Assembly (NCBI GenBank): GCA_904063045.1
Contig: CAJFCJ010000002.1
Location: forward strand, 2,224,161 to 2,288,160
Length of the DNA: 64,000 bases
DNA from: Dimorphilus gyrociliatus
Taxonomy: Eukaryota > Animalia > Annelida
Direction of reading: 5' to 3'
Shown here: piece after piece, positions 39,367-53,674 of the stretch
Numbering within the stretch: position 1 is the first letter of the stretch
Layout of the letters: each line of letters opens with the position of its first letter
Made by a program: the position numbers and the translations under genes
Notes under the pieces: model-generated
Database searches by the model: none
Told to the model about the DNA's origin: nothing
What the model saw: only the letters and a program-made list of their open reading frames with translations

Positions 39367-42300
39367 TTATGTAGAAAATACACTTTCTTTCCTGCCTGCA
39401 GGAAGATAAGAGGAACTGCTACTTATATCAGAATTATCAGAGTCACTAGTGGTAAAGTCTGTTTCGCTGTTTTCACACGAACATCCATCGCTATATGAGG
39501 TATCTATAGTCATTTCAATCTGAAAATTGAATAGAATTACTTACAATCAGTTTGATATGAATGCAATATACTAGCCTTTTCTACAATAGAATCTAGTAGA
39601 ACAAACGATTGCTCATTATTGGATCTAGTTTGATCAGTATTGATTTTATCCTGAAGGAAAAATAGCATATAAATTTCAATAATGTATAAATTGCTTTTAA
39701 TGAAAATTAGCCTTACATTATCATCTGAAATTGTTGTTTTGCTACATTCTTCGTAGTGTTTTTCAATAACTTGTAATTCCGCTGCTGGTGGTGTCTTTTC
39801 TTCGTATTTGAATGGTCGAAACCATTTTTTGAAATATTTCCGAAAGCATGAAACCCTATGAAAGTTAATTTAAATATTTATCACTGAAATTGATTATTAC
39901 TTTTCTGACCCTATTATAAGTAAGATAACTGCAACGATTCCACAGACTAAAAAGATAATAAGTAGTATTTTGCTGGTATCTGTTATATTATTATAAAGAG
40001 TAATCAATTTTAATCATTCATTTATAAATAATAGTAATTTAAAAATAACCAACCAGGTATACAAAAGTCTGATGAATTTGAAGGTTGACTTTCTTTTGAA
40101 ACATATTCTACACCATTCAGATCTCTATTTACAGTAGTAATATAAGCTTTTACATTTACTAATTTCTTAGTACAATCCAATGCAATAGATGAAACACGAT
40201 TTGTAACTTGGTCGGTTAGATTAAAGTCTTTACCGCGCAAAGTAACGTTATAATCTATAAGATAAGAAAATTATACAATTATTATAAAAATTGTGACTAT
40301 TTATCATAGATATTACAAAAAATTATTCCATTTTTTATAGATGGTTCTTGCCATTTAACTACAGCTATTGAAGAATCATCATTGTCATCCTCTAATGTTA
40401 CTTGGCCGTGTGATAATTGTTCAGCAGCTAAAAATATAAGGTGAAAATCTAAAGATAGACAAAAGTTAAGTCACCTCTTTACCTCTCATTGCAGTGAAAA
40501 AATAGAAAGTTTTTGACCAAGGAGATTCTCCTTTTGCATTTATTGATCTAACTTTTACTGAATAATTTGTATATCCTTCGAGTTCATCTAATATATAACT
40601 GTCGTTAAGGTTATACCGAAAAACTTTTATCTTACTCCATTCATTATCGTTTTTATTCTTTTTCTGTTAAGATTTAATATTATTGATAACTTTCTATGGT
40701 TTTGTTGGAAATTATTCGTTTTACTTACTGCCAGTGAAATTTCATGAGATATAATTCTACCATTAGGATATTCAGTTTCAGAAAAATCTATTATTACTGA
40801 CGTTGATGTAAGATTTAAGGCTGTAATGTTAGTAGGTGGAGTTTCAGGTATATTTTCATTCGTTACTTCTTTGTAAACAATTGACGATTTAGTTTGTAGT
40901 TTCTTCTTTGTAATCGCCGTTACTACTATTTCATATTCTACATGTGAATCAAGATCTTCTAATTTAAATACATCATTGTTCGAATAAGATTGAAAAGTTT
41001 CATCTGAAAAACAAAAGAAAGACAAAACAACGATTTGAAACCTAATTCAAAGATAATGGTACTACTAACTCTTCCAAGTCTCTCCATCATTTTTTGATCG
41101 ATATTCAAACATAACTTCATTAACAAAGCCATAGTTTTCTTTACATTCTCGGTTCAATTTAAAAGTTAAACTGCTTGATGTTTTGTCAATTAGTGTTATT
41201 TCAGGGATATCTGGTACTAATAAATAAAAATATTAACGTTGAAATTACAACTAAGGAAAAGTAAATTATACATTTATATATTTAAATTGCAATTACCTCT
41301 TCCTTCAGTAAAAATACATATCCAATCGCTTATACCCGATTCTAAACTTCCGAATGAGTATTTTAAAGCGTATTTATACATAAGATTTCGAGATAAAGTT
41401 AAATTAAATGAATTATCTCCACTTTTCACAAATTCCGTATGTTCTATAATTGATCCTTCCTATTAATTATCACTTTGTTAATTATTCCGTCAATTGTTTA
41501 GAAGTTTTATCTATTCTTTTACATTTGTCTTCCTGTTGGGATTGTTACGATATGGTACTCACCGAGCAAGAAGTAGATAAACAATATAAAAGTGTAACAT
41601 TCATATCCCTTTCCTCACTATTTTCTGTATTCCATGAAAATTTGATGACGTCAGAACTAGGGTTTTGTCTTTCACCGTATAAACCATTCAAATCTCTGCC
41701 TACTGTTTGAGTTTTTATGAAAAAGATGTGATAAGTTTGTTTCGAAGTACTATTAAACATAATATAATAAACAAACGTTCTGAGGGTTTGGGAAGAATAG
41801 CAGTATAATCCGGAGAAGATCCTTCTTCGTTCGTTGCCGATAATGTTAGATTATAAACATTTTCGGTTTGAATAGCGAAACTTGAAGGGATAATGAAAAG
41901 AGAAAGGTTTAAATTAAATGAGAAAAACTGAGTGAAAGAGAATGGAAGGGATGATTGGAAAGAGAATGAGAAATTACCAATGTTTCCTGCTTGAGTCTTC
42001 GATAGATTTGTAAGGTTGATGCGGAGTTTCTAGAATTGTTGTAAAATATCGAAATTCACCATTAAGATTAATTAATGGAATATCTCTAATAAAGATGCAC
42101 AATTCACAATTTTTATAACAAGGCGATTGATATCTATAGCCAATTATTGAAGGTGGAAACGAAGGATCTGAAGAATTACAGATAGTAATAAAACCTAATT
42201 TCTTAAAAGTATATATTAAATATAGCTTACTTAATGGTGGAGTTTGAAAATACTTCATGTTTGAACGATCAGACCAATATATACTGTTTGGCAGCTTACT

Positions 42301-51700: not shown

Positions 51701-53674
51701 GTAAATTTTCAATTGTTTGTCAACTTATAATAGATCGCATTAGAGTACAATTGAAATTTTATTAGGTTTTTATTTCCATAGTATGATTAATAATAATCTA
51801 ACAACGTCTAAAAAGAAATGCTATTTGTATAGAAAAATAGTGAAGGTATTTATAAATATAAAAGAATTCTATACAAAAGTAAAGCTTATTTATTATTTTG
51901 CCTAAAATTGAATTGTCTTTAATGTAATACTGTATAAAGAAATTTATCTATTAGAGTCTCTTTCTCTACATTTTCCTGTCTTACCTTACAGATGTTGATT
52001 CATATTGAAATTTTACAGCTACTTCCTCTTCATTATTAGATGTATCTCTTTTATAATAACAATATTGTATAGGTCCATTTATAGACCGTCTAGGTATAGG
52101 ATTTGTAAATAATTCAACTATAAGACAATGTAAATAATCAAAACATTTTGTAAATTTTAAACCAACAATCCTCAATGGTTCCGATGGTCCTATTCATTTA
52201 AAATATAAAAGAGTCAAGTAAATAAAAGATACAAAAGCAAAACAACAAAAACTTATTTACTTACTAGAATTTTTAGTTCTATCTGCGTTTACAGTTGTTT
52301 TATCACTCCAATATCCAATTAAAGTACCATTACGATTAAATGTTCTACATCTCATAGATAATTTGTATATTGTATAAGATAAGAGATGTTTTGCCGTATA
52401 GTTATAATTGTTAAACAATAGAATAACCTTAATTGTACAAATTTTCATACATTTGTTTAAATTATTATAGATTAAGTTGAAATATATTACCTTTTTATCA
52501 GTTTCATCGTATAATGGATGCATTGTTAATTCAAATGCAATGTTATAAGTTATATATCGTTTATGCTGCCATTCAATAATCATGCTATTTGATTGAACGT
52601 CACTAAAGACTATATCTTTCACAGAATTGGGTTTAACTTGAAAGAAAAAGCTATAATTAATATTCATAGGCAATTCTTAAAAAAATGAAAAACTCTCTAA
52701 AAGCTACCTCTGTTAAGATTATGATCAATTTGGAAGTTCTTTGTTTGTGTAATTATTCTTCCATTTTGCTTAGATCCCATTCTTGTTCTAGATATTAGTG
52801 TCATATTGTAATCACTTCGACAATATATTGCATCTTGATATTTGCTGGTAAGAGTACTTTTGTAAAATTTACATTCGAGTTGATGATCTAATATGCAGTA
52901 GGAACGTTTTGACGCTTCTCCGCAATCCCTTTTTTATTATTATCATTAATAAACAAGAGTAAAATATTTAATTTTTATATATTTAATTTACTTTGTTGTT
53001 GTCCATGTTAAGTTAAATAGAGTTGAAGGATAACATGAATTCGGAAGATGTAATTTACAAGTCATACTTTCCCAATTATAATCAATGCATTCTAGAGAAG
53101 ATTCATCAATCAAAAGTCTACAATAAATGCGTATCTTTTTTTTTTTTGAGAAAAATGAATAATTACTAATTTATACTTTAATAATAAAGGTAAAATATGT
53201 AAATACCTGCATTTTTATTAAGTCATTCTCTTGTTCTTTCAATGAACAATATATAAAAATCTGATCCTCCTCTGATATGTTGTCTTTTTTGAAAAATATT
53301 GCAGTTGAATTTAGTATTTCGTAATTAACTGTAACTTTTGTATTGTAATCGGAACTGTCAATAGAGGAAGTTTCTTTAAATACTAATTGTTTTATATAGT
53401 TGTTCGTAAACCTACCGTTTTCGATAATACATTGTCATGTTTGAAGAGGAGTACAATTTTTCAAATTCTGGCTTTAGTGAGCAAGTTACTATTAGAGGTT
53501 CTCCAACAAATAAATCGTTGTTTGCGGTTATTTCTTGAATTGGAATTATTTGCTTTATTAAGGATATGAAACTGATTATGAAAACAGCCACTTACTTATA
53601 ATTCTTGTAGTTCTGATACTTTCTAAGCCAGTTAGTTGAAAAATGATGATAATAAATAAAAAAAGAGTCATCAT
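48768..53674 (-). CDS. Type I cytokine-receptor-like protein A (Ig + CBM + about 5 FN3 + TM + tail); 3' end approximate
   Basis: Signal MMTLFLFIIIIFQLTGLES; Ig LFVGEPLIVTCSL; LECIDYNWESMTC; GYWSDK; FN3 NLTPFTNYSIHIQA, TPEGPPDNIT, LIGYTNYSLAIRV; TM IVGLTVSATVGILFVVCTAMII; shares DWICI with receptors B and C. Confidence 0.75.

Follow-up and report, generated by a model that had tools for sequence, protein, structure and literature searches.

Three tandem candidate gp130/Domeless-type cytokine receptor genes in the annelid Dimorphilus gyrociliatus

Cytokine receptors acting upstream of JAK/STAT in invertebrates are poorly known outside arthropods and a few molluscs. The order Ig-CHD-FBN-TM-Box1, in which the homology domain of cytokine receptors (CHD) consists of two fibronectin type III (FN3) domains and TM denotes a transmembrane helix, is the signature topology of Dome and GP130, and the CHD itself is recognised by CX(9-10)CXWX(26-32)CX(10-15)C in its first FN3 and by a WSXWS motif at the end of its second, a motif described as 'slightly variable', for example in GHR (PMC1963337). 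Dome comprises a cytokine-binding module, a region of ~200 amino acids (aa) termed LDHR and three FN3 domains, and the gene for the shorter Latran (Eye transformer) adjoins it in the same orientation, 153 bp away (PMC2914635). Molluscan 'IL6R'/Dome-like receptors combine a signal peptide, an Ig domain, a cytokine-binding domain, FN3 domains, a TM helix and a tail, and co-occur with JAK and STAT; a BLAST survey at an identity of at least 30% found such receptors in protostomes only in Mollusca and Arthropoda (PMC13203501). Here we describe three minus-strand paralogs, lying in the order C, B, A at positions 53674 to 39367 of a 64,000-nucleotide stretch of the Dimorphilus gyrociliatus genome (assembly GCA_904063045.1, contig CAJFCJ010000002.1, 2,224,161 to 2,288,160; hereafter the window, to which all coordinates refer). 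Structure matches, intron phases, sequence motifs in the ectodomain and proline motifs in the tail are the four lines of evidence that lead us to regard genes A, B and C as probably belonging to the tall class I cytokine receptors of gp130/Domeless type, of which they would form a rapidly evolving branch restricted to this lineage.

Gene models were built with a self-trained exon-chaining script and then corrected by RNA joints, the raw sequence and comparison among the paralogs, the RNA data being spliced contigs of public run X1 placed on window positions 43200-49150. The window is A+T-rich (~28% G+C) with short introns, and every intron of the three models is of the GT-AG type, with lengths of 45-357 nt. 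Gene C (53674-48945, minus strand) has 19 exons encoding ~966 aa, which comprise a signal exon, an Ig domain, an FN3 pair carrying the Cys and WS motifs, a second FN3 pair, three further FN3 domains, a TM helix and a short tail. Gene A runs on the same strand from an ATG at 43889 to 39367, with 20 exons, ~982 aa and the same layout. Gene B (48277-44836, minus strand) is shorter, with 16 exons encoding ~758 aa when a predicted micro-exon is included, or 532 aa without a TM helix in the form seen in RNA contigs; its layout is signal, Ig, Cys/WS pair with the first Cys pair only, an FN3 pair that forms part of a sequence cassette shared with gene A, one FN3, TM helix and a tail of ~105 aa. Public annotation covers this locus in part. 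The GenBank record for gene C holds only the N-truncated DgyrCDS1454 (718 aa, here P0001), which starts inside the first FN3; this D. gyrociliatus entry at NCBI agrees in every letter with the protein encoded at 52804-48945, and P0001 matches our gene C model exactly from residue 205 on, bar a few exon choices. For gene A the record holds only a 620-aa 3' partial at 42258-39537, and at the position of gene B no gene is called in the GenBank record. The C-terminus of gene A is ambiguous at 39541-39490, where the annotation stops at 39538 (...QTDCK) and an alternative GTAATT donor at 39540 joined to an acceptor at 39491 would instead give a 41-aa acidic, Ser-rich tail ending at 39367. A tblastn search of the window with the three models did not find a fourth paralog.

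In all three genes the first exon is of a hydrophobic signal type and ends in phase 1, and the next two exons encode an Ig domain with GEPLNITC...YKC in A, GEKLRILC...YNC in B and GEPLIVTC...IYC in C. The first FN3, again on two exons, carries C-x9-C at an aligned position in A, B and C, and a second Cys pair, C-x8-C, in A and C only, being absent from B. The second FN3, also on two exons, ends in YWSDRS in A, YWSEKL in B and YWSDKT in C, with YWS(D/E) invariant. The GYWSD string is presumably also that of the WSXWS region of human gp130, a resemblance we use as a lead only. In gene C the Cys/WS pair occupies exons 53134-52992, 52928-52708, 52636-52491 and 52427-52265, and in gene A four exons within 42231-43053, both on the minus strand and both with intron phases 2-1-0-1. 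Five FN3 domains follow this pair in A and C and three in B, of which the membrane-proximal 'legs' number three in A and C and one in B. Each gene encodes one TM helix, followed by a tail of ~90-165 aa in which Pfam finds no domain and no enzyme domain; each unit is hemmed in by RNA ends and neighbouring genes, which leaves no room for additional exons. The gene models therefore have the Ig-CHD-FBN-TM-Box1 order without a kinase domain. A preliminary description of this DNA, made from the sequence alone, had proposed three same-strand genes with a signal exon, Ig domain, FN3 repeats, one TM helix and no enzyme domain, with three FN3 after the module in B and about five in A and C, and the gene models and Pfam bear this out, with the correction that the link of B to its TM exons is uncertain. 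Its further claims stood in part: the Cys-paired module is represented by C-x9-C in all three genes but lacks its second pair in B, the WSxWS-like motif by YWS(D/E) but not by a strict WSXWS, and the proposed gp130/Domeless likeness by the structure matches, the 2-1-0-1 phases and the Box1-like motifs, but not by a strict CHD signature or a cytokine-receptor Pfam profile.

The second FN3 pair lies at 50959-52189 in gene C (four exons, minus strand, phases 2-1-0-1, ending TDWICIY), where it is the counterpart of the cassette shared by A and B, and at 41297-42167 in gene A. It has an N-terminal Cys cluster of its own, repeats the 2-1-0-1 phases and ends in (S/T)DWIC, and it may have arisen by internal duplication of the cytokine-binding module, as a degenerate copy; these proteins would then be double-module receptors like LIFR, LEPR or TPOR.

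The first line of evidence for the class assignment is a structure search with the ESM Atlas model of P0001 (pLDDT 0.67, pTM 0.45), in which the Ig domain and the greater part of the first FN3 are missing. All ten of the ten matches listed for residues 1-345 are gp130-like, OSMR, IL12RB2, G-CSFR, IL31RA or 'Cytokine receptor' entries, with TM-scores normalised by query of 0.59-0.75 over 261-327 aligned residues, and those listed for residues 134-340 are again only of that family (TM-score 0.50-0.71), with gp130/IL12RB2/OSMR/IL31RA clusters at 0.62-0.71. As a control, residues 335-640 of the same model return DSCAM, sidekick, RPTP, L1 and Mer at TM-scores of 0.37-0.47, with one cytokine-receptor row. 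Because this control region finds adhesion proteins, the match to tall receptors is specific to the N-terminal half and not general to FN3 chains. Sequence comparison points in the same direction at one place, where a phmmer search of the PDB with P0001 aligns gp130 chain 8v2b_B collinearly, residues 91-421 to 260-577, at E=2.6e-5.

Gene structure provides the second line of evidence. The first eleven intron phases are identical in A, B and C (1,2,0,2,1,0,1,2,1,0,1), and the phases 2-1-0-1 of the Cys/WS pair, which are RNA-verified in B, follow from this common series. They are those of the D200 module of cytokine receptors, whose pattern is the same in class I as in class II. For class II receptors this pattern is documented as 1-2-1-0-1-0 (PMC8863823). 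The three membrane-proximal FN3 domains have another exon layout than the Cys/WS pair and serve as an internal control. The tails supply the last line, with Box1-like proline motifs within ~20 residues of the TM helix in all three genes. The best of the three is KKLYIPPIMP of gene B, which resembles GHR and PRLR and is encoded, together with the end of the TM helix, by a juxtamembrane exon at 45164-45224 (minus strand) whose flanking introns (45224 to 45285 and 45099 to 45164) are both seen in RNA. In gene C the TM exon at 49564-49637, for which the P0001 annotation uses the same junction, is followed by a post-TM exon at 49291-49196 that encodes the Box1-like TPDYPSPALP (both minus strand). 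Gene A has WFRPF..TPP (KKWFRPFKYEEKTPP), a weak Box1-like motif. Motifs as short as these three are no proof that a JAK docks there.

Set beside Dome and Latran, the three genes likewise encode protostome, kinase-less, single-pass receptors with a degenerate WSXWS motif, from adjacent genes set very close together in the same orientation. A and C follow the order of Dome, with the second FN3 pair at the position of the LDHR, and B resembles Latran in being the shorter neighbour, here without two of the three FN3 legs. The Dimorphilus genes differ from Dome in that each carries an Ig domain at its N-terminus, as gp130 does, in that there are three genes and not two, and in that the CHD is spread over four exons in phases 2-1-0-1, whereas that of Dome is a single exon (PMC1963337); nor is any sequence similarity to Dome detectable, and YxxQ is missing from the long chains A and C. 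Gene B differs from Latran in keeping one FN3 and a Box1-like motif. With gp130 the genes share the Ig-CHD-FN3x3-TM-Box1 topology (PMC1963337), a multi-exon CHD and the weak collinear phmmer match given above, and the tall group-2 receptors as a whole (gp130, G-CSFR, IL12RB2, IL31RA, OSMR, LIFR) are the only structural neighbours of the N-terminal half of C among the Atlas matches listed. Extra FN3 or CHD modules as in LIFR and OSMR are a further likeness, and tandem gene pairs exist within the tall group. Unlike gp130, with five FN3-type domains, the long Dimorphilus chains have seven; the strict Cys/WSXWS signature is absent, as are matches to Lep_receptor_Ig, IL6Ra-bind and LIFR_D4; the tails are much shorter (~90-165 aa) and have no recognisable Box2, Box3 or YxxQ array; and the intron at the Ig/CHD boundary is in phase 0 in A, B and C, not in phase 1. 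The molluscan receptors, finally, have a recognisable IL6R domain and were found by BLAST, whereas the Dimorphilus genes escape such searches.

Under the assignment that we favour, each gene would encode a single-pass receptor in which a signal peptide, an Ig domain, a degenerate cytokine-binding module, a second FN3 pair and the legs precede a TM helix and a Box1-like tail. A secreted ligand would bring the ectodomains together as dimers or hetero-oligomers, whereupon tyrosines in the tails would be phosphorylated by a JAK-type kinase held at the Box1 region. Signalling would fall to the long chains A and C, and the short chain B would be a co-receptor or else, like Latran, a soluble or negative chain.

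Judged by their sequences, the three genes are duplicates that are either old or fast-evolving. Exon for exon, A is collinear with C, with exon lengths (in nt) from the 5' end of 94, 109, 142, 140, 185, 158, 157, 190, 104, 140, 163, 147, 275, 181, 111, 201, 79... in A and 79, 118, 148, 143, 221, 146, 163, 205, 104, 161, 157, 141, 272, 181, 111, 207, 74... in C, and yet their overall identity is 24.5%, with 21.1% between B and C. The much higher figure for A and B (46.9%) is due to one near-identical block only. This cassette of 896 bp, which contains the second FN3 pair, occupies 41272-42167 in A and 45873-46768 in B (both minus strand), and its two copies are 99.1% identical, with 7-8 mismatches, between flanks that are ~30% identical. 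Its start coincides exactly with the acceptor at which the second FN3 pair's first exon begins; it takes in four exons and three introns, and ends ~25 nt into the following intron. Because the cassette introns are as identical as its exons, the likeness reflects a recent event at the DNA level, namely gene conversion, and not selection, and B was probably the recipient of an A-to-B conversion. An assembly artefact was considered as the source of the cassette and rejected, since both B-specific junctions are present in RNA, one as the joint 46768 to 46836 and the other in a contig that runs from 45916 into B-specific sequence. The cassette contig of gene A is correctly spliced to the next exon of A (RNA loose end at 45902).

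The cassette bears directly on whether B makes a membrane receptor. Its last exon ends in phase 1, and the next verified exon of B requires phase 2. A direct splice from 45898 to the acceptor at 45723 is out of frame, and the only way to restore the frame is a predicted micro-exon of 22 nt at 45829-45808 (minus strand), which is absent from the RNA contigs. The sole contig over 45916-45557 is unspliced and has an in-frame stop at ~45869, so translated, it yields a 532-aa secreted protein of Ig, module and FN3 pair without a TM helix. These observations open the possibility, which we hold tentatively and somewhat below an even chance, that B is not a working membrane receptor at all and is instead a secreted decoy or soluble receptor of 532 aa, or a decaying gene, having become so after the cassette overwrite or independently of it. 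The absence of B from public annotation and its lack of a second Cys pair and of two FN3 legs would fit such a history, which is compatible with the receptor assignment for A and C. On the other side, the last four exons of B hold ~229 codons open across three RNA-verified junctions in DNA of 72% A+T, for which we estimate a chance of ~1e-9 from base composition, and they encode a good TM helix together with the best Box1-like motif of the locus; moreover, the acceptor of the predicted micro-exon aligns with the acceptor of exon 12 in A. The contigs drop minor isoforms and so cannot show that an isoform is absent, and for this reason B may make both membrane and soluble forms, or its membrane form may be impaired.

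Whether the locus belongs among the cytokine receptors at all has to be weighed against a considerable set of contrary observations. The structural evidence comes from one moderate ESM model, with the pLDDT of 0.67 and pTM of 0.45 given above and with neither the Ig domain nor the bulk of the first FN3, and AlphaFold2 run without an alignment on P0001:1-345 gave a pLDDT of 31, which is unusable. The same residues have no PDB sequence match below E=0.3 in phmmer, where chance antibody matches alone appear. The strict CHD signature is not present, in that no W follows the second Cys (SV, SI and KL stand there instead), the spacing to the third Cys is 21 residues in C or 35 in A and not 26-32, and the second Cys loop has 8 residues and not 10-15, with no second pair in B; of WSXWS only the first W-S is kept, and the next FN3 pair ends in SDWIC/TDWIC. 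In Pfam scans of 35 exon pieces, each scanned separately, and of P0001, no exon and no part of P0001 matches IL6Ra-bind, EpoR_lig-bind or Lep_receptor_Ig; two sub-threshold entries appear, LIFR_D2 once with E=0.14 and Interfer-bind with E=0.058, and LIFR_D4 is missing. An exhaustive search of 1.84 billion representatives with a profile of the WS domain (D2) of the three paralogs recovered C and otherwise just generic FN3 repeat proteins (RPTP-like and bacterial), and neither orthologs nor A or B were among its results; P0001 as the query of word-index searches, at E<=0.001 and at E<=10, returned only itself and one 27-bit match; and the first FN3, at an exon-level identity of 15-40% among the paralogs, is too diverged for a useful profile. 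Neither A nor C has a YxxQ STAT site, and B has one (DYLYQ). The genome paper and its supplements are silent on JAK/STAT, and the genome itself was not searched for JAK/STAT.

Much of this would be expected if A, B and C were generic Ig/FN3 surface proteins, employed in adhesion, in guidance or as another class of receptor, that bind neither a helical cytokine nor a JAK and resemble tall cytokine receptors only because both are chains of FN3 domains. Consistent with such proteins, fn3 (PF00041) is the only Pfam family that passes, at up to E=6e-29 in P0001, and the best PDB sequence matches, stronger than that to gp130, are to LAR/RPTP-delta, titin, Dscam and contactin, though these are confined to the canonical FN3 pair at residues 342-473. 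The Cys and WSXWS signatures fail in their strict form, ordinary FN3 domains too can have a 'WS' ahead of the G strand, such as ESPWSK in the sixth FN3 of A, and short proline motifs could be due to chance. We nevertheless consider this explanation unlikely, on three grounds: the structure searches with residues 1-345 and 134-340 return tall cytokine receptors almost exclusively, while the control region returns adhesion molecules at much lower TM-scores; all three genes, despite an identity of 21-25%, have the 2-1-0-1 phases and, at the A-B strand position, C-x9-C; and tails that are short, carry a Pro-rich motif immediately behind the TM helix and contain no other domain are a fit for kinase-less cytokine receptors. 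The assignment to the gp130/Domeless type thus remains the one that we prefer.

The transcript data bear on where each of these candidate receptor genes begins and ends. RNA contigs show 15 CT..AC joints within 43200-49150, 14 of which are introns of the models. Thirteen introns of gene B are seen in this way, namely all ten through the cassette and the last three, and so is the first intron of gene A (43796 to 43450); the last coding intron of gene C (49195-49119) is backed by a spliced RNA loose end, and all three genes have RNA depth in the contigs of the run. Gene A begins near 43938-43947, with an adapter-tagged RNA end at ~43938, gene B ends at ~44775, and RNA depth is zero at 43996-44194 between them. 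The tagged 5' end and the zero depth together establish that A and B are separate transcripts, in agreement with the preliminary description, which had proposed separate genes. A low-depth RNA contig (depth ~7) lies at 44328-44666 in the otherwise silent spacer between B and A.

Between C and B the boundary is less sharp. An intron at 48852-48793 (minus strand; RNA joint 48788 to 48849, cut +4) lies 3' of the gene C stop, and the exon after it continues unbroken from 48792 into the first coding exon of B (RNA contig 48794-48194). A contig that reaches from 48794 to the first donor of B, together with an intron donor at 48853 past the C stop, implies that C and B transcripts overlap or read through, so that either the 3' untranslated region (UTR) of C overlaps the 5' UTR of B or some transcripts read through. 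The reading frames themselves are separate, because C stops at 48945 and many stop codons follow before the B ATG at 48277, 668 bp downstream. That the three segments are one long gene or a single read-through transcript is very improbable, for although the unbroken contig starting at the acceptor of an intron beyond the C stop speaks for it, start codon, signal peptide, TM helix and stop codon are present separately in each unit, the C frame is closed as just described, A is set apart by zero depth and its tagged 5' end, RNA depth falls about five-fold from ~100 over the last exon of C to ~20 over B, and the D. gyrociliatus genome paper reports no operons and no trans-splicing (PMC7854359). 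At 48657 (minus strand, ...TTAAG/ATAAG), between the C stop and the B ATG, one RNA contig has an AG acceptor joined to ~75 nt that occur nowhere in the 64-kb window; a search of the window for the 30-nt sequence joined at 48657 did not find it. This piece could be a distant 5' exon of B, part of a chimeric contig, or a leader-like sequence.

The preliminary description had presented the locus as a candidate for an undescribed system, and in this it went too far, as receptors of the gp130/Dome type and their tandem duplication (dome/latran) are already known. What is new here is a strongly diverged annelid version with three tandem copies, an extra FN3 pair and a recent cassette conversion. We infer an expansion of a known family, and not a new kind of system; any role in signalling, with coupling to JAK/STAT, combinatorial heteromers and undescribed ligands, is putative. 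The locus suggests the presence in an annelid of several such receptors, missed by ordinary sequence searches and by public annotation, and it supplies expressed candidates for asking whether receptor multiplicity and short or decoy chains (compare dome/latran) evolved repeatedly. It also puts on show a clean and very recent exon-cassette gene conversion between diverged paralogs. A more far-reaching proposal, which we regard as quite doubtful, is that Dimorphilus, and perhaps dinophilids generally, has its own fast-diverging gp130/Dome-type family, in which long signalling chains and short or soluble chains form combinatorial complexes with lineage-specific four-helix ligands and gene conversion shuffles the middle FN3 pair; if true, such a family would stand as a counterpart, evolved independently in an invertebrate, to the radiation of IL-6-family receptors in vertebrates.

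Two neighbouring genes flank the triad. Adjoining gene C upstream is a single-exon gene at 55412-57373 (minus strand) that encodes a Cys-rich protein of 653 aa with a signal-like N-terminus and a hydrophobic C-terminus, for which Pfam gives only a sub-threshold match to DUF7043 (E=0.0012). At the other end, an actin-family gene (Pfam Actin in the annotation) lies on the plus strand at 38000-39221, tail to tail with gene A, and ~150-250 bp separate the stop regions of the two genes.

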